DNA of 44,456 nucleotides from Basidiobolus meristosporus CBS 931.73 (lineage: Eukaryota > Fungi > Basidiobolomycota): contig MCFE01000694.1 of NCBI GenBank assembly GCA_002104905.1, forward strand, positions 1 to 44,456, given 5' to 3'. The position numbers and the translations under genes are program-made. The notes under the pieces were generated by a model that made no database searches, had not been told where the DNA came from, and was given only the letters and a program-made list of their open reading frames with translations. Position 1 is the first letter of the stretch. The number at the start of each line of letters is the position of its first letter. Positions 1,623 to 22,134 of this stretch are shown here, one piece after another.

Positions 1623-2977
1623 GATTTTGGAATGGTCTTTGGACAGGTTCGGCCCATCGATTTTGGATGGGGAAAGCATCCCCAGGAAGAGTAGATGGTA
1701 TCACTGGTTTAGATCCGAATGGCCTCTGGTAAAGCAAAATGGAGTATTCATGGGGCAGTCTAGATGCGCCACTGTCCTAGAGACACTTACTTTGGTGCAT
1801 GGGAGCTGGGATTAGGACTGTGATTGTTTTTTGCTTGGGAGTCAGACTTACATGAGGGCCAATGGTCCAGGATCGAAGAAGGGTGCCACACACACATCAT
1901 GTAGTGCTAGTGGGCCGCATTACAGCGAACAAGACTGGGATCGTAGGGAGCTTGGGATGGGCCTGAGGAGGGATTCTAAGCATGGGAGGTCATACAGGTC
2001 CAGCAACAACCAAGAGACCAACTGATCCCTGGAGGGTAGGTTACCCCACAACTGTTACCAATCCATGCCTTACATGGTTGGTTTAAGCACCGCAAATTCT
2101 GGGATTCAACCGGAGATCCCAAGGTGGGGAAGCTTCCCGACGGGTGGTGGACAGAGCCCGCGTATGCCTAAGCTCCCTGGGGATCAAAAGTGGCGATCTG
2201 GTCAGCAGCGCCCCGGGCGAGTCCCCGAACGGCTGCCCGCTCTCTCTCTCTCCCTCCCCCCCCCCGACTACCTCCAAAAAAAATACCAACCGAACCTGGA
2301 CGTCTACCGGTCAACCCTGGTGGATTTTGGAGGGGATCGGGCTGCCACCTGGTGGATGAAGTATCTAACATCGACCCGGGGCTATTTGATCCATCCACAC
2401 TGGAACAAATCATCAGTACACAAGGAGGTAACTAACCCTAAGGTCAGACCAACGATTAACCTCATCCGCCCCCGAACCAGATCTCTGGATGGTTACCCTT
2501 CTTGTTTTCACATGACTTCATTCAGCCAATACCCCTCCTTTACCAAAGGAGCGGGTTGGTGGGGGGGGGGGAACACGCGTCATCCACCACCCGGCCAACC
2601 TTCTTGAGAGGGCACCCCCTGTCCAGGCGTTTACGGCAGAACCGGTTTATTTTTGTTTGTTTGTTTGGAGTTTTTTTCGAGAGGGAGTGGAGAGAAGGAA
2701 ATACATGTACATATAGCTATATATATTAGGTATATATCTATATAAATCGACTGAAATATGGGACTGAGAATCAAAAATACACACGAATTTCGGGGGTGGA
2801 CCAATCTCCGGGCGTGGAAGAAAGGGCGACATGGAGCGGCCGGTACGGAGCATCGCGAGGGTGGCGGTAAAAGCGAGGGGGAAGGGGGCGCGCGGGGGCG
2901 AGTGTGAGGTCAAGGTCGGGTCAAAATCGAGAGTGAAGAAAGCGGGATGACGGTGGACACCAGGTGGTGGGGGAGCC

Positions 2978-5486
2978 CTAAGCCTGGTGCTTCATGAGGT
3001 TGAAGGTGGGCTGGTTGGCCTTGAGGTTGGAATAGAAGTTGGGAACATTGGCCGGGATGGACTCGTTGGTGTTCACCGGCACCGGCACCGGGACATGGTT
3101 CCGGTTGAGGGGGACATTCTCCCCCGATTTTTCCCCGGCCAGCTCGGGATTCCCCGGGAAACGCACGTCCATCCCGCCGTCGTATTGGCCCACGTACTCG
3201 TTCCACTCGTCGAAGTCGAACGAGAGCGGCACGTTCCAGATGGGAAGGAAGTTTCCTTGGGGGTTGCTGTTGTTGAGCACCTGGGCGAAGCCGCTCTGGG
3301 AGTTGGCCGACATCTCGGTGATGGTGTTGGTGGGCACGATGGGGTTGAACCCGGCGGTGGAGATGGAATACGGCCCCAATGGGGAGATGGTGGTGGGGAT
3401 GGCTCCGGGTTGAGCGTTGGGTGCAAAGGCCATGGGAACCTGGTTGGGGAATTCCGAGGACATACGTGGCGGATACATATTGTCGGACATCTGAAGGGGG
3501 CTCACCCCCGCATCCCCCATGGAACCAGTCGCTTGGCCCAGAGGGAACTGGTTGTTTCCTGGCAGGGGGTTCGAGGCACCGTTGGCCAAAACAGGGCTCG
3601 GCTGGGTGACTTCATCGTCGTCCAGTTGCATCCCTCTGGCGTCGAGTAAACTCTTCAGCACGACGTAGTACTTGCCCGCGCTACCCCATCGGCCTCTCAC
3701 CATCTCCAGGATCTTGAGGTTCTTGCTTAGACTTTTCTTGGCGGACTTTCGTAGCCAGGGATCGTTGGAGGTGGCGTTGATGAGGTGAACGGTGCTCGAG
3801 GTGAACATGGGGAACAGCACCAGGACGAGGAACTCCTCGCATTCGGGTTTTCCGTGGCAGGCACCGGCGATGGCGGTGATGCTGTTCGCGGAGGTGGTGC
3901 AGATGTGCAAGGATGGATACGGGGAGGGAAGGACCTTGGGCTTAGGCTTGGGGATGTAGGGACGGTGAAGCAGGATCAGCGCGTTGTGGTACAGGATGTG
4001 GATGTAGGCCACAAGCGGAGCGGCAGGTGGGATGCCCGCGAAGTATTCGGACGGCTCGTACTTCATGCTACTCGGCAAGGATACTTGCCAGGTGTGCAAT
4101 GCCGAATCCAGTTCCAACAGGATCGACTCGCTTCGGATGGGGTTCTCGGTGGAGGTCCCACGAATGGCATAGATGTTGTTCAAGATCGACCCAATGATCT
4201 CATAGAGTTTCACAGACTGAACAAACACCTTCATGCAGTATCCGGCTTCTGGGTCGGACATCACCTGAGGCGAATCCAACTCGACCTGGGGAATGGTAGG
4301 ATAGTTCGTATCGCAATGCCTGTCGTCAATGCAAAGCGGTCTTCCCATCGAGGCACTGGCGGTACGATCAAGGATGTAGCAGGCCCACCAGACACGCTTG
4401 CGAGTTTCCCTGACCTCGCTAGAAAGTCGCTGGGTTTGCCACGAGTCCGGGTTTCTGTGCAATCCCAAATCCTCGGCAAGACGAATGGCCATTCCGCTGT
4501 AGATCCAGGACTTGATACCACCGTGGGTGATTCTGAAGCAGATCGAGAGTAGAACCAAAGCCTGGACGTTCGAGAGAGAGGTGACGTCGTAGGACTCGTT
4601 CAATAGCTGCTTCGCTCGACTGTAAAACACCTCGAAGCGAGCGTTCTCCTTGTGCAGCCATTCCCTCTCCCTGGACAGGTTGGAGGCCAGGGCGAAGATG
4701 GAGTTGAGTAACAGCTTGGACACTCCGTGGACGCTTTTTCGAAGCTCCCCATAGAAATGGGCCTTGTGGAGTAGGGGGAAGAACGGGTTGACGAAGGTGA
4801 AGTAGACTTCTAGCAAATGCTCGAACACCGGTCCGGAGGGGAGTAGATCGGCTCTGTCTTCGGAGTTCTCCTGGTTGGATGGCTCTTGGATGAACGACCG
4901 GAGCGAGTCGAAGGAGTCCTCGGTTTTCACGTTCTCCTGTAGGAGGTAAAACCCTGAACTGCCGCCCATATATCTCACACGGCCGTGGTCGTCGAAAGGT
5001 GAGTTGGCTCGTCTCATCGCCCAGCGAGTCTACTGCCGGGTCAGGGACCAGGCTCTCTTGAGGGCTACTCTTTGAAGAACTGCTAAGAGGAGAAGTGCAC
5101 CCCGAATCTGGGGAACCCTTGGAGCGGTTGTGTGGGTTTCGGAAGCGTTCGGTAGACTTATTGGAACGTTGTGAATGAATGATGGCTGTGGAATCGTCGA
5201 TCTCGATTTTACGAAGCTCGGCCATGATGTTTTCGGCGACGCGAGGATCACTCTGAGCGAGTCCGCCCAGCAGGTGCTCCATGCGGTGCAGGCGGTTTTC
5301 GATGGCCTCGATGTATCCTTTGGGAGGCCCCCGCTTTTTGGTCACATCAAGATATGTACATTCGATATTAAGAACTTTACAATGGCCGCAACACGGCTGC
5401 ACCCCGTCACAGCGGACCTTCTTTCGCCGACAGTGGTCGCAAGCACGGCTGACACGCTGTCGCTTGTGCTCGTCCGTATTAGTCAT
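2978..5486 (-). CDS. Zn2Cys6 binuclear-cluster transcription factor with fungal-specific middle homology domain; one +1 frame junction at 4995-4997
   Basis: N-terminal RACDHCRRKKVRCDGVQPCCGHCKVLNIECTY zinc cluster. The +1 frame holds RYMGGSSG, YFTFVNPFFPLLHK and ETRKRVWWACYILDR..ASMGRP. The two halves join only if one base is skipped at ACC TTT CGA. Confidence 0.9.
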
Positions 5487-7264
5487 TTGTGTGGGCTAAC
5501 CTTATGATGGTTTTATCTGTACAAACACTCCGGAGGATTGTGCGAAGTGGGGATGGAAGTGGGAGCGACTGGATCAAGGGGAGATGGGACGGTTCCGGGG
5601 GAAGAGAGTAGATCGTAGATATGAACAAGTGGGATCTATATCAACGAGAGTACTGGTCAAAGTACAACACTGTAGTTCAGCTGCGAAGTGAGATCTATGC
5701 GCAAAAATCCATGGGAAGCGGGAACTTATTAATCAGTCAAGCAGCCCCTCGATGTGGATTTCCCAACCCTAGAAATGAACCACTCTGCCATATGCGGTAA
5801 TTCCCGCTGATGATAGAAATTTCGGTCATGCTAATCAATGGATCCCTCGCGAATCGCCACCCAATCTCGTCGTTATGAAAGGGAGGGCTTGGGAAGCAGT
5901 GACGTCGTTTTGGAAGTGTACGGGCATCCGTGGCAGGTGAAAGGGGGAACGGTTTAACCCTAATCCAAATATAGGGCGATGATTGTGCAGCCCAGCAGTG
6001 TAGCCTCGGTGATGGAACTTCTTTGGATCGAAGCAAACCGTATCTGTACTAGCTCCCCTTGATCGCTGTTTCCAGCGGCAATTAGATTTCCCGAAATGAC
6101 GTTTCGGTACCTTCCGGCCCACGTGGGTGTTTGTGATCGAGGTCTAGATTACTCCTAGCCGATATATTAGGCACATTAACCGATGAGCACAAGCAGATTA
6201 CCGCAAGAAGGTATCTTCGCTTATAGGTAATTTTGAGGTTGACCACAAAAAGGTATCTGCGCATATGGGTAGATTTGAAGTTGACCTCAGAAATGATCCA
6301 TCCCAAAAGGCTTGTTTAGGGAATAATCCACCCTATATACACCCGAAGAATCTAGAGAGCTAGGGATGGTCCATTTTTGGCCTCCATCCACTTTGGTCCA
6401 TTGTTTGTAGACGGCTGACATGTTCGTGAGTATATGGTTAGGGGCTTCCGGTGTGCTCTAAATATGTGGCAAGCACTCATGTTACTTTTGGGAGCCGGAT
6501 CCAGGACCAATTGCTTCGCCAAAACCTTATAGCAAATACGAGGGTGTGGGTCGATTTGATGCTGCTTCACCACATTCCGTGTAACCGGACTTGAAGAAGG
6601 GTTGACCACGCGGACTCAAGAACGGACAGGGGTGATGTTCATTTTGGGATTGGGTATTGCTCTAGAATGAACTATCAATACGATCAGGGCCAATCTCTGT
6701 GTGAACCAAGATGCAAAGCCTTGGAGCTAGCACCAGTGGATGCTCGAGTCGAGATGAAAACAACACCAGGAATGGCGTAAATGCCTCGGGTCAGAAAGGG
6801 AAATGGTAGAATTGTGTGAAAATCAACCCAACTTGGGGCTAATACGGATACTTTCGCTGGTGCTGGCGGAGAAATTCGGCAAGTTGATAACGCGATTAGA
6901 TCGCGGATGCGACAACTTCTCTGAACCTTCCAGTAGCCACCATCTCATCAGATTTGGCCTTCGTTGAATGAATCTGTGCTCCAAAAACTCCCCCTGGCAT
7001 CCAATGGATCGTGATTAAGGTTACTGACATCTGCTTAGTAGAACCTTCTATATAAGCATAATGACTAGCACCGATAATGCGAATTTCCACGAAAGCGATT
7101 TAGGTTAAACCTTTCTAGCCAGAGAATTATCGTCTAAAAGTAGGTTTAGGTTCGCACTTAAAATAACCTTGAAATCTAAACACGATGGAGAAACCCTGAG
7201 GATAAGTATTTTGGACATGAAAAATTTCGCCGATTTCAGTCTTGCTGAGATACCCACCATCCCA

Positions 7265-7884
7265 ATGGCGAAAATAACTGAACTTGACAACCAAGTCAAA
7301 CACAAGCCTCGTCCACGCAAGCCTCTCATAGATGACATTCCTGAGGCGGAGAAGCATCGCATCATCGAGGAGACCGGCATCTTGAAGCAGGTGAAGATCC
7401 CGAAGCCAGAAAACCAGCCACCCCCAGAAGGCTACTTCTTACAGGCCGTGTTGTTCACCATTCCTTTCACCTTATTGTTTGGTCTTTTCGAGGCCTTAGT
7501 GTATCAACAATACAATAACGAGGTGACGATCGCTATGATCTGCAAGAAGATGGTGAAGGTGTTCCCAGGTAAAGTCCATTCTGTTTTGCTCCCACTTGGA
7601 CGACACTAAACCAACCCTCTGTAACAGGCCTGCTCTTGATCATATTCATCACTTGTCGCTTCCGTGATCTAAAGTTGATGACCCCCGCCCTGACTGTGAT
7701 CGGTGCTATCTCAGGGTGCTACCTATTGCATGTGCTCTACAACGATCCGGCCTTTGGGGTTATGATGCGTTGCCCAGGCTTGGCAACCTTCTGGATTTAT
7801 TGCATCTTTCAACTGGATCTGATCCCCTGCCTTATCAGTCTGTTGCCCGTGGGAGCCTACTATTATTTCTATTATCATGTATGA
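7265..7884 (+). CDS. Conserved-looking fungal multi-pass membrane protein of unknown function, 2 exons
   Basis: Intron 7569-7627 (GTAAAG...TAACAG) joins the two track ORFs in frame (VFPG|LLLIIF). Several hydrophobic segments. Start could instead be the ATG at 7217. Confidence 0.75.
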
Positions 7885-8413
7885 TTGGAAGACAACTCTT
7901 CAGTAAAGGAAACCATTTCCCTCTGATGTCGTGTGTTGTTCGTGCGCTGTAGGTATTTCTCTAGTAAAGGTATTTCCTTTTCTCCTTGCCACTTGGCTCT
8001 TGTCTCATATCGCTAACTCTGGTATCCAGTCCAATGATGCAGTGTGCAGCCAACTGCAGACAAGCCGCCGCCTGGGCAGATACAGACTATGGTAAGTTGG
8101 TTTCTCCACTGGATTTCGGGTTATTGAAATTGGGGACTTGCCAAGAGGAATCTTGCGTTCACTAACATTGTGAAGTCCCATCCGACGTAACCCAAGAGTA
8201 AAAGATACATGACCTGCTGAAGACCTGACATATTGAATATCGTGTTCATGGACAGATACCTGGCCAACAATCTCGTCGTCGGTTTCCACCCTAGATTTTA
8301 CTAACTTTATTCATATTTAGCTACAATTCGGAGATGCCGGTGATTAGGTTAGACGAGCAGATGCTCCCCAAACCCAACCCCCATCTTGGTTAATAAATAC
8401 TGGTTATGTGAAA

Positions 8414-9290
8414 TTAATAGCTCGCTTGCGGGACAAAAAACGGCTAATGAGGCCATAGTTAGTAGGCTGGCGAAGGGGCAGTGGGCGTTGCTTACCTCTA
8501 GATCGTCAAATGCCGACAGCCTGGGAATCTCCGGAAGCCCGAAAGGGTTGCCCAATAGAAACCCGGTCCGTAACAAGCTATTTGTTGTTTGGAATAATGT
8601 GGAGTAACGATTCGGTATATTTTTGCCCTGGTGCAGCGTCAACAGATCCTGCAGAAGTTCAGGGTTCTCCAGGAGCACATCTTTGCTTAGTTTGGGAACG
8701 GCTAGATCCGGATCCAGCGTCTATATGGGTGAGTGGGAATGGGAGATATGGGTGAGAGTGGGAATGGGAACAGCTGATGAGATTTCCATATTTCGACATC
8801 ACTCACCATCATCATTCCGGTGGAGTTGTCGAAGCTGATATGCGCGGTGTGGTTGAAGTTGGTGGGATTTGACACCCCCTTCATGGGCGATCGCTAGGGA
8901 GACTCGAGTTCAGGCTGGGGCTCAACCCTATGACAGAAGGAAAGATACCTTGTAGATGGCGTCCATCCAGGACCACATTTCACCGTCCGATTTGAAGCTG
9001 ACGAACAGCGTTTTGAGTCCAGTGACCACCTTGATGCAGTAGGCTCGGCTACCGCAGCGCTCTAGATCTCGGATCTCTTCGAAAAACAAAGTCTCCAGCA
9101 CCTTCGCCTCGTTCTAGTCAGACAGGGTGAGTCGTGTGGGAACATCGAAGGGATGAATCGGTCGAACCTGTGGTTTATGGATAGTGATACACGTGTTCTT
9201 GAGCATAACCAGGCGCTTCGACCACAACCAGCTACCCATGCCTACTCCGCGAACCGACAGATAATCGCGCTTAATCGCCTCCATGGTCAT
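8414..9290 (-). CDS. PH + CRIB/PBD protein resembling the Cla4-type PAK N-terminus, with no kinase domain (209 aa, 5 exons)
   Basis: Exons 9290-9168, 9113-8949, 8893-8807, 8720-8496 and 8443-8414, with four phase-0 GT-AG introns (the last has a TACTAAC branch point). PH-like motifs SWLWSKRLVML and FKSDGEMWSWMDAIY. CRIB motif VSNPTNFNHTAHISFD. TAA stop at 8416-8414. Confidence 0.85.
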
Positions 9291-10030
9291 GGCGGATGCT
9301 GGGAAATGGGGAGGCGTAGTGGCTGTACTGGAAGTGGTCGATGGATGTCTGTTCATCTTTGCCAGCTATCAGATAGAAGGGCCTGAGGTATGCTTGGGGT
9401 ATAATGTTTACAGACAATGGTTATGGGCAACGCTAACTCTAGATGAAGCAAAGGGAGGTTTCTGTTGAGAAATCCTCCAAACAGCGCGGCTTTTTAATCA
9501 ATCCAAATGTAGATGAAGCGTGCCACTTGCTCCAACTCCTACTTTTCTCACGCCGTTCATTCCCCACACAAAGTGGCTTGTTGGATGCACGGCGACGTGG
9601 TGCAGCATTGATTAGTTTTTACCGAGCACGCTCTGGCTGCACGTCGCTTCCTTCAAACACTTGTCCAAGTAGCGAGCTGATGCCTTCGGAGTTAGCTCAG
9701 ACAGACGACACACTTGTTTCAATTGAAAATGTCGTACGACAGTCTTGTTGGGTTCTTGGTTTGACAAACTGGTTCCGAGGGCTCTGCATATTTTTCCCCT
9801 GCTATCGTTGGTCAATGATCTCCGTTTCGAATAGACTTTTGGGTGGAATTTCATTTGGTGGGGGCCAATCAGATGAGCTCCCACTGTACAATCACTGATA
9901 TTTATGGCAATTTGACAGGTTAAGGTTGGAGAGTAATTCTATTTGAGAAATAGGAGTGTCACAAAGAAACTGTGCTGACAATGTAAATAGCTCTCCTGAG
10001 CGCATCGAATCTCACTCCTGTTCGAGTACC

Positions 10031-20375: not shown

Positions 20376-22134
20376 ATGATCGCAGGTGTTCGAGAGGCAA
20401 AGACATTCCTGAGTTCGGTGTATCAACGCTCCGAAGACTCCTCGGGCAAAAAACCATACGTCACACTTTCCTATGCTCAGAGCTTGGATGGTAAGATTTC
20501 CGGCCCGGGTGGCAAGATGATTTCTCTGAATGGGAACGAATCAATGGCTATGGTCCACCGGTAAATGTGTGCTGCCTTCGCAATATTGGACAATACGACT
20601 AATCGCTCTCCCATAAAAGCCTACGTGTGATTAACGATGGTATTTTAATTGGCATTGGGGCGATGCTTCGAGAAGACCCACGCTTGACAGGTACTTTCTC
20701 TTTATCAGTCAGCATGCGAACCCTGAACCTAACAGAACAATGTAGCTCGAGTGGTGGAGCCTGGCGAGATCCCAGATCAGCCACAGCCTATTATTCTTGA
20801 TTCCAACCTTCGGTTTCCTTTGAAATCAAACCTGATCTTGAGTGCCTCCCAAGGTGGCGGAAAGTATCCCTGGGTATTCTGCGGTCCTGATCATTCCCCT
20901 CAACGTCGACAGGTATTTCTCCATAGCCATTGTCCATGACGAGCAAACTCCGCTAACGTTAAGAAGGCGCTTGAGGCGGCTGGGGTTCAGGTTTTTGTTG
21001 TTTCGAAGCAAGGCGATAAATTATCTATTCGCGAAGTTCTTAAAAAGACCGAGGAATTGGGCATTCGTAAACTCATGGTTGAAGGCGGCACAAATGTCAC
21101 GCGGGAATTCTTGACGTCTGGATATGTGGACCTTTGTGTGATTACCTTAGCACCCATGTATATCGGCGGGACCGGCATATCATTAATTGAAAACGGAGAT
21201 GTATGTAATTGGATTCGATCAGGGCTAGCAGCTTATGTAAATTAACTCTATTCTTTTGGATACTTGATGTTAGCATCGGCCTGCATCAAAGCTAAGCGAC
21301 GTAAGGTATCACCAGTTTGGTGCAGACATGGTCGTTACCGGATATGCCTCGCCCATTGCCCAAGGAGGACCTCAAAACCAACCAGCCACCTATCCACATC
21401 ACAGCACCCCTCCACCTTACCAACAACCAAATGGCGGGGGAATTTATCCTCCGAATCCTAGCCCTGGCTATCCGCCTACACCATTGAATAGTGGAAATTC
21501 ACAGCAAGGCCGCCACTCCGAAACCGGACCACCACTTCCTCCACGAAATAACACCAGTTCTCAACAGGGATATCCTCCGAAGAGCACCACCCCTGTGCAC
21601 CAGAGCTCGGGATATCCACCACAAGCTGCCTCAGGCTATCCACCACGCCCTGTTGGCTATTCACCCCAAGCTACTTCTGGTTATCCACCAGCTACCCCTG
21701 GATATCCACCACGGCCAACCTCTGGATATCCACCACAACCTACTTCAGGATATCCACCGCAGGCTTCTTCAGGATATCCACCACAGACCTCTTCAGGATA
21801 TCCACCACAAGCTACTTCAGGATATCCACCACAAGGTAGTTCAGGTTATCCACCCTATGTTACAACAGGCTATTCGCCACACGCCAATGTAGGTTATCCA
21901 CCTCAGGCTGCCTCGGGCTATCCACCACCAGTAAACGCGGGCTACCCACCCCACACTACCACAGGTTATCCATCACGCCAATCTACAGGCTATCCCTCAA
22001 AGCCAACGCAGGATCCTTATCCTCCTGTACATCCACCACCCAAGACAGACTCATCAAACCAAAACAGTGGAAACAAACAGAGCGGGTACCCATCCTCGAA
22101 CAACCCTCCCCAAGAAGCCACCACCACAAAGTAA
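20376..22134 (+). CDS. RIB7: Rib7-type pyrimidine reductase (RibD C-terminal fold) fused to a ~260-aa S/G/Y/P/Q repeat tail (506 aa, 5 exons)
   Basis: Exons 20376-20560, 20620-20690, 20746-20912, 20964-21200 and 21274-22134 total 1521 nt. Motifs PYVTLSYAQSLDG, DGILIGIG..L..DPRLT, LMVEGG and YHQFGADMVV run in frame into the repeat tail. Confidence 0.85.
21604..21996 (+). repeat. Imperfect 24-bp coding repeat (xxSGYPPQ octapeptide)
   Basis: Units such as TCAGGATATCCACCACAAGCTACT. The whole tail has 15 GYPP, 2 GYSP and 3 GYPS motifs. Confidence 0.9.

Follow-up and report, generated by a model that had tools for sequence, protein, structure and literature searches.

Kinase-less PH-CRIB proteins in Basidiobolus: a short gene family derived from the PAK kinase Cla4

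PAK kinases are central effectors of Cdc42 and Rac in cell polarity, and their regulatory fragments, in isolated form, have found wide use as biosensors and artificial inhibitors. [quoted passage not shown] A selected gene family encoding just the PAK regulatory fragment would be a natural experiment in non-catalytic PAK control. The stretch of DNA analysed, referred to here as the window, is the complete 44,456-bp scaffold; full-length analyses were run on the database record of the protein, P0093 (231 aa).

Reading of the minus strand and translation of the exons one by one gives five exons between 9356 and 8414, separated by four GT..AG introns that are all in phase 0 (Table 1). Exact threading of the protein onto the DNA gives the identical five-exon model, and the product that starts at the ATG at 9356 agrees in every residue with the public protein K493DRAFT_307990 (P0093) of the same strain. 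Splicing and the 3' end are read from conservation and from this public model. The five exons, the four phase-0 introns with GT..AG ends, and the PFFVPQASY terminus had all been recognized in the initial annotation of the locus, but its product of 209 aa, begun at 9290, is too short. An in-frame ATG lies 66 nt (22 codons) upstream of that position, at 9356, and yields 231 aa; it is most likely the start of translation, because the public model starts there and because the orthologue and the paralogues have kept the added N-terminus (M..PST..S/T-rich). The gene is adjoined upstream by a divergent SLC35F gene, and 530 bp separate its stop from the end (7884) of the last ORF of the convergent DUF7719 gene. 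Intron 3 (8721-8806, minus strand) contains a direct tandem duplication of about 24 nt in its C/T-rich 3' end (CCCATTCCCACTC..CACCCATAT, twice), which accounts for its length of 86 nt as compared with 57-72 nt in relatives.

Table 1. Features of the PH-CRIB locus (positions are those of the window).
Feature	Position	Strand	Basis or remark
PH+CRIB gene, full coding region, 231 aa	8414..9356	-	Exon translation, threading, public protein
Exon 1, aa 1-63: Ser/Thr/Pro-rich N-terminal extension and first half of PH domain	9168..9356	-	
Intron 1, 54 nt, GT..AG, phase 0	9114..9167	-	Position of intron 1 of Basidiobolus Cla4
Exon 2, 165 nt, aa 64-118 (55 aa): second half of PH domain	8949..9113	-	
Intron 2, 55 nt, phase 0	8894..8948	-	Position common to Cla4
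Exon 3 (CRIB exon), 87 nt, aa 119-147 (29 aa)	8807..8893	-	
Intron 3, 86 nt, phase 0	8721..8806	-	Position common to Cla4
Exon 4, aa 148-222 (75 aa): degenerate GLPxxW segment, inhibitory-switch-like helices, disordered tail	8496..8720	-	
Intron 4, 52 nt, phase 0, branch site CTACTAAC	8444..8495	-	
Exon 5, 9 codons (PFFVPQASY) and stop	8414..8443	-	
PH domain, aa 27-118, split by intron 1	8949..9278	-	Pfam, AlphaFold model, Foldseek
CRIB core MKGVSNPTNFNHTAHISF; consensus S, P, F and both His kept	8831..8884	-	Pfam PBD, alignment
Inhibitory-switch-like segment, aa 158-177	8631..8690	-	Aligns to PAK1 K..NPQAVLDVLEFY helix
C-terminal linear motif LPEIPRLSAFDDL	8499..8537	-	LPEIP and F positions invariant in 6/6 members
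AATAAA about 103 nt 3' of the stop; fits a poly(A) signal	8306..8311	-	Hexamer frequency in the window not above chance
Last ORF of the convergent DUF7719 neighbour; bounds the PH+CRIB gene on its 3' side	7636..7884	+	

The window gene is real and has no kinase domain. Pfam finds no Pkinase match in P0093, the HRDxKxxN catalytic-loop motif occurs in none of the six frames of the 44-kb window, and tblastn with the kinase domain of Basidiobolus Cla4 has no match in the whole scaffold. The initial annotation had seen no kinase motif in the gap of about 530 bp between the gene and its convergent neighbour and had named splicing to a distant kinase exon as the alternative; the motif scan and the tblastn search are empty across the whole scaffold, and no such exon was found on it. 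The same query has no match at the loci of the five other family members described below (with flanks of 8-10 kb at most, where the contig allows) or in two Agaricales loci with tandem PH-CRIB units, and it matches strongly at the two true Basidiobolus Cla4 loci, which served as a positive control. The motif scan of the window also returned GGGFLGRV near 22125 on the minus strand, a match unrelated to kinases.

A second control for the tblastn search was provided by P0034, a 241-aa chytrid model that had been a candidate for a kinase-less PH+CRIB protein: the search finds a kinase 1.4 kb downstream on the same strand, and the candidate was rejected as a split Cla4. Irineochytrium annulatum (L010) has a tandem pair of Cla4 genes (1952-4395, 5001-5921, and 7096 onward), the second copy of which is split in the annotation, with the PH+CRIB part given as a 241-aa protein and the kinase domain fused to an ECM29-like neighbouring model. 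Clusters of PH+PBD proteins of 236-378 aa from Ascomycota and Basidiomycota in the ESM Atlas were not counted as kinase-less, since they may be fragments of the kind that P0034 exemplifies.

On the whole 231-aa protein the Pfam PH profile scores 32.4 bits against a cut-off of 25.1, and exon 3 by itself (29 aa) scores 32.7 bits with the PBD profile against a threshold of 21.3; the whole protein passes both, and the CRIB comes directly after the PH domain. In the AlphaFold model of P0093, which was built on a 40-sequence alignment, the strands and helix of a PH fold are modelled over aa 27-119, with block-mean pLDDT of 90-97 over aa 31-120 and lower values for the first residues; the tail is disordered from about aa 180. 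The best Foldseek matches in the PDB are phosphoinositide-binding PH domains, with TAPP1 at the top and PLEKHA7 among them. The PH domain has a basic pair, K47 R48, that does not vary in a 16-sequence alignment with Cla4 N-termini; at least 90% of the sequences in the 40-sequence alignment retain K47, and R48 is not among the positions listed. The last residue of the CRIB consensus, Gly, is Ser in the window gene and Asp or Asn in Basidiobolus Cla4. The Pfam matches and the alignments thus bear out the order first read from this locus, in which a PH domain, a CRIB and an inhibitory-switch-like helix follow one another as in the N-terminus of Cla4.

Further members of the family were collected by an exhaustive HMMER search with exon 2 (55 residues) and a follow-up search. 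A word-index search with the 123-aa open frame of exon 4 (region 1-75), limited to proteins of 68-215 aa and so blind to the 231-aa product, gave no match. Besides P0093 (231 aa), B. meristosporus has P0091 (216 aa), and Basidiobolus ranarum has P0092 (238 aa), P0001 (217 aa), P0090 (219 aa), and P0061 (240 aa), all consisting of PH + PBD only. The range of the family is that covered by one exhaustive search of 55 residues and by word-index searches, and in this range the short PH-CRIB family has so far been seen only in Basidiobolus. Its six proteins of 216-240 aa have in common the PH domain, a CRIB core of the form MKGVS.PTNF.H..H, in which S, P, F, H, and H are invariant in all six, an NP helix, and a C-terminal LPEIP..S.F; their alignment has 55 invariant columns, among which every one of these features is represented. 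All six thread exactly onto their loci, where exon 2 is 165 nt long and the next phase-0 intron follows 87 nt on; intron 3 is absent only from P0061. The syntenic orthologue of the window gene is P0092 of B. ranarum, which has the SLC35F, DUF7719, and Zn2Cys6 neighbours in common with it and the same five exons, the last being 27 nt long (FFMAQTSY). P0091 and P0001 also lie in shared synteny, and the two species hold at least three paralogue lineages, all of which are older than the split between them. The Zn2Cys6 fungal transcription factor gene of the window (2978-5486, minus strand) consists of two overlapping ORFs in different frames, a Zn_clus part (4419-5486) and a Fungal_trans part (2978-5017, minus strand), so an intron is required to join them.

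The exon structure points to the source of the family. In Basidiobolus Cla4 (P0140 and P0159) exons 2 and 3 are exactly 165 and 87 nt long, as in the short genes, the 165-nt exon 2 being common to Cla4 and every paralogue, and the first three introns of Cla4 and of the short genes coincide in alignment column and in phase. Because intron positions, phases, and the lengths of these two exons all match Cla4, the family must have arisen from Cla4 by duplication of its 5' part at the level of DNA, with loss of the linker and kinase exons, and not by retroposition. When the N-terminal region is placed in a tree, the six short proteins group together on a long stem, with 100/100 support for their clade. 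Two such trees were made, the first with the tandem units of the Agaricales proteins and the second without them; in the first the Agaricales units join the short family on long branches (82/82), and the best tree in their absence places the short clade beside Basidiobolus Cla4 with negligible support (46/0). The group around the short clade and Basidiobolus Cla4, which is poorly supported in the trees, includes Cla4 of Mortierellomycotina. A profile search and a tree against Cla4/Ste20 had been proposed as a check on the initial annotation, and in the tree the short proteins make up this fully supported clade.

Rates of evolution were estimated on coding sequences built from the genomic loci. 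P0093 and P0092 are 73% identical as proteins, with a dN of 0.154, and the synonymous sites between them are saturated (dS of 3.07 by YN00), which gives an omega of about 0.05. NG86 fails on saturated synonymous sites, so YN00, the identity of four-fold sites, and the alignability of introns were used in its place: identity is 32% at four-fold sites and 84% at the first two codon positions, and the introns of the two loci cannot be aligned. The CRIB (dN 0.045) and the PH domain (0.086) are the most constrained regions, and the switch region and the tail (about 0.26) the least. The N-terminus of Cla4, with a dN of 0.027, is slower; the short family evolves three to ten times faster. That the proteins are still 73% identical at a dN of 0.15, although synonymous sites and introns are saturated with change, indicates strong purifying selection on the window gene and hence its maintenance. 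The initial annotation had taken the gene to be maintained and had suggested dN/dS with an orthologue as a check, a value near 1, together with a lack of expression, speaking against it; the omega from YN00 lies far below that, and the syntenic orthologue with identical exons, the old paralogue lineages, and the invariant CRIB and tail motif agree with the claim.

The tail follows a family consensus of invariant LPEIP and then [KR]-[LM]-S-x-F-[DE]-[DE]. Outside the family, among 188 proteins retrieved, the motif was found in two Dimargaritales (Tieghemiomyces and Dispira) and nowhere else; there it lies in the linker of Cla4 and reads LPELPQRMSVLFD; LPEIP is absent from Basidiobolus Cla4. It may accordingly be described as a putative old linker motif of Cla4 that the short paralogues have kept, the link to Dimargaritales consisting of two sequences. 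Two roles can be proposed speculatively for the tail, that of a Bem1-type SH3 ligand (an aromatic residue, PxxP, then a basic residue) and that of a PAK-type phosphorylation site (R-x-S ahead of hydrophobic residues); yeast Cla4 and Ste20 have PxxP sites for the SH3 domain of Bem1 (PMC7409549). A partner of LPEIP could reveal an interaction of Cla4 that is not yet known. The Cla4 models of Tieghemiomyces parasiticus (P0081) and Dispira simplex (P0186) lack exactly the 29-residue CRIB segment, and since these 29 residues are a separate 87-nt exon in Basidiobolus, it is probable that the gene models pass over the CRIB exon and that it is not truly lost.

In Cla4 the PH domain and the CRIB act as a coincidence detector for phosphoinositide and Cdc42-GTP. 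The reading of the short proteins that we favour, and consider reasonably probable, is that they are non-catalytic binders of active Cdc42/Rac and of lipid at membranes, which either compete with Cla4 and other effectors or serve as adaptors through the tail. The PH and CRIB pair would jointly detect an acidic phosphoinositide and GTP-bound Cdc42/Rac at growth sites; having no catalytic domain, the short protein would then occupy the active GTPase, and its tail motif would engage a putative Cla4-type partner. The outcome would be competition with Cla4, with other effectors, or with GAPs, or else an adaptor role, and PAK-dependent polarity signalling would be tuned or re-routed. The short PH-CRIB proteins thus probably modulate cell-polarity signalling with no enzyme activity of their own. 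An over-expressed stand-alone CRIB fragment, the PBD of Gic2, lowers free Cdc42-GTP in yeast (PMC7409549). Against this reading count the Ser that ends the CRIB consensus, the loss of the GLPxxW segment, and a rate of evolution above that of the Cla4 N-terminus.

The segment that follows the CRIB could point to a different role, in which the protein would be a PAK inhibitor domain supplied in trans: its CRIB and switch would dock on the kinase of Cla4 or Ste20, or heterodimerise with the regulatory region of Cla4, and so keep the kinase inactive until Cdc42/Rac-GTP binds. A fragment of PAK1 comprising residues 83-149 holds the kinase off in experiments, and when the six family members are combined into a profile, it aligns with the PAK1 autoinhibitory fragment (1F3M_A) from the CRIB through the beta-hairpin to the switch helices, at an E value of 2.2e-9. 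In the AlphaFold model of the window protein, aa 137-148 are predicted to form a beta-hairpin, and the predicted helices span aa 160-165 and 167-177 (pLDDT about 75-84); the second switch helix, NP..L, is kept, with N166 and P167 invariant in the family, and the Asp that matches D126 of PAK1 is retained. However, the first switch helix, GLPxxWxxLL, which in PAK1 carries L107, has been deleted from the window gene and from its orthologue, and the other paralogues have a degenerate version of it. In alignments with Cla4 N-termini the window gene has TLDPD and a four-residue gap in place of the GLPxxW segment, so that both the decay of this hinge and the retention of the NP..L helix, noticed when the locus was first read, are confirmed. 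The Pfam PBD match of P0093 also stops at position 30 of 59 in the profile, the kinase-inhibitory segment cannot be aligned, and dN reaches its maximum in the switch region (0.26). The loss of the first helix, the lack of an alignable inhibitory segment, and the fast evolution of this part weaken the idea of inhibition in trans, which we regard as unlikely. The GLPxxW segment of PAK1 touches the GTPase as well, and by analogy its loss from the window gene and its orthologue might weaken GTPase binding.

A further reading, to which we would give equally little weight, is a division of the work of Cla4 between genes. The short proteins would be trans-acting regulatory subunits that pair or compete with Cla4 at Cdc42/Rac patches, and LPEIP would be their docking motif, present in cis in Cla4 of Dimargaritales and lost from Cla4 of Basidiobolus. 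Were this the case, nature would already encode, in three specialised paralogues, a module that regulates or inhibits PAK.

The sign of the effect could also be the reverse. CRIB binding slows both intrinsic and GAP-stimulated GTP hydrolysis, and the CRIB and PH determinants of the short proteins are intact; the protein might therefore act as a positive regulator whose CRIB shields membrane-bound Cdc42/Rac-GTP from GAP-stimulated hydrolysis and stabilises the active patch, with no competition with Cla4. This proposal leaves the invariant C-terminal motif and the three retained paralogue lineages unexplained, and a free CRIB fragment in yeast depletes usable Cdc42-GTP instead of stabilising it (PMC7409549), which makes positive regulation doubtful. 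That the locus is no working gene, whether as the decaying 5' remnant of a Cla4 duplicate or as part of a longer kinase gene that was wrongly modelled, is barely credible, and the dead pseudogene, against which the initial annotation had already argued, is rejected: duplicates are abundant in Basidiobolus genomes and the similar-looking P0034 is a split Cla4, but the open frame, the splice sites, and the tiny last exon are kept across two species whose synonymous sites are saturated, where unconstrained sequence would have lost the frame, the four splice sites, and the level of protein identity, and there is no kinase-coding DNA on the scaffold or near any paralogue, with a convergent neighbour close by and conserved synteny.

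Cla4-type PAKs (Cla4 of S. cerevisiae, P0140 and P0159 of Basidiobolus) resemble the short proteins in having an N-terminal PH domain, a CRIB directly after it, and the NP..L switch helix, and identity between the window protein and the Basidiobolus Cla4 N-terminus is about 35%. The window protein differs from these kinases in having no linker, no Ser/Thr kinase domain, and no GLPxxW helix, and from Basidiobolus Cla4 also in its added N-terminal S/T-rich extension, its C-terminal LPEIP, and its much faster evolution. The PAK1 autoinhibitory fragment (1F3M chain A) is part of a kinase, isolated for experiments, whereas the members of the short family are genes in their own right; compared with that fragment they have no conserved first switch helix and no kinase-inhibitory segment, and a PH domain precedes their CRIB.

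The non-kinase CRIB effectors (Gic1/Gic2, plant RICs, animal CEP/BORG, SPEC, and WASP) are alike in being non-catalytic proteins with a CRIB, and they bind active Cdc42/Rac, but their output regions differ from those of the short PH-CRIB proteins. We know of no Gic, RIC, CEP/BORG, SPEC, or WASP effector with a PH domain of the Cla4 type or with a PAK gene as its ancestor. Homology to them outside the CRIB is not known, and Pfam finds PH + PBD only in the window protein. Gic2 joins its CRIB to a lipid-binding element, and a review of CRIB proteins gives yeast PAKs and Gic1/2 only, with no PH-CRIB-only family (PMC8847673). From its sequence relationships the short family would thus count among the non-kinase CRIB effectors, with a PAK gene as its source.

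Literature searches found no description of a fungal family of kinase-less PH-CRIB proteins. The suggestion that the architecture had not been described thus holds for published papers, but the proteins themselves are already deposited with PH and CRIB labels, as hypothetical proteins or, in B. ranarum, under the name 'Protein kinase'. All four B. ranarum members bear that name in NCBI and UniRef (KAK9720428.1, KAK9716889.1, and the records behind P0090 and P0092; GCA_040143965.1). Since they have no kinase domain the name is wrong; it looks like an error of annotation transfer from Cla4.

A similar architecture is found in Agaricales, where uncharacterised proteins of Crucibulum laeve (TFK38767.1) and Infundibulicybe gibba (KAF8879949.1) are kinase-less and made of two Cla4-like PH + CRIB units in tandem, (PH-CRIB)x2. 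Their genes (L008, 5001-6323; L009, 5001-6387) lie in shared synteny beside a G-alpha gene, with no kinase-coding DNA within 5 kb. They differ from the Basidiobolus proteins in carrying a second PH-CRIB unit, in lacking the LPEIP tail, and in belonging to another phylum. As their grouping with the Basidiobolus family is weak (82/82) and involves long branches, the tandem form is likely to be of independent origin. Agaricales have a third tandem member, whose sequence on a Logan contig of 1.2 kb seems to have no introns and may for that reason be a transcript.
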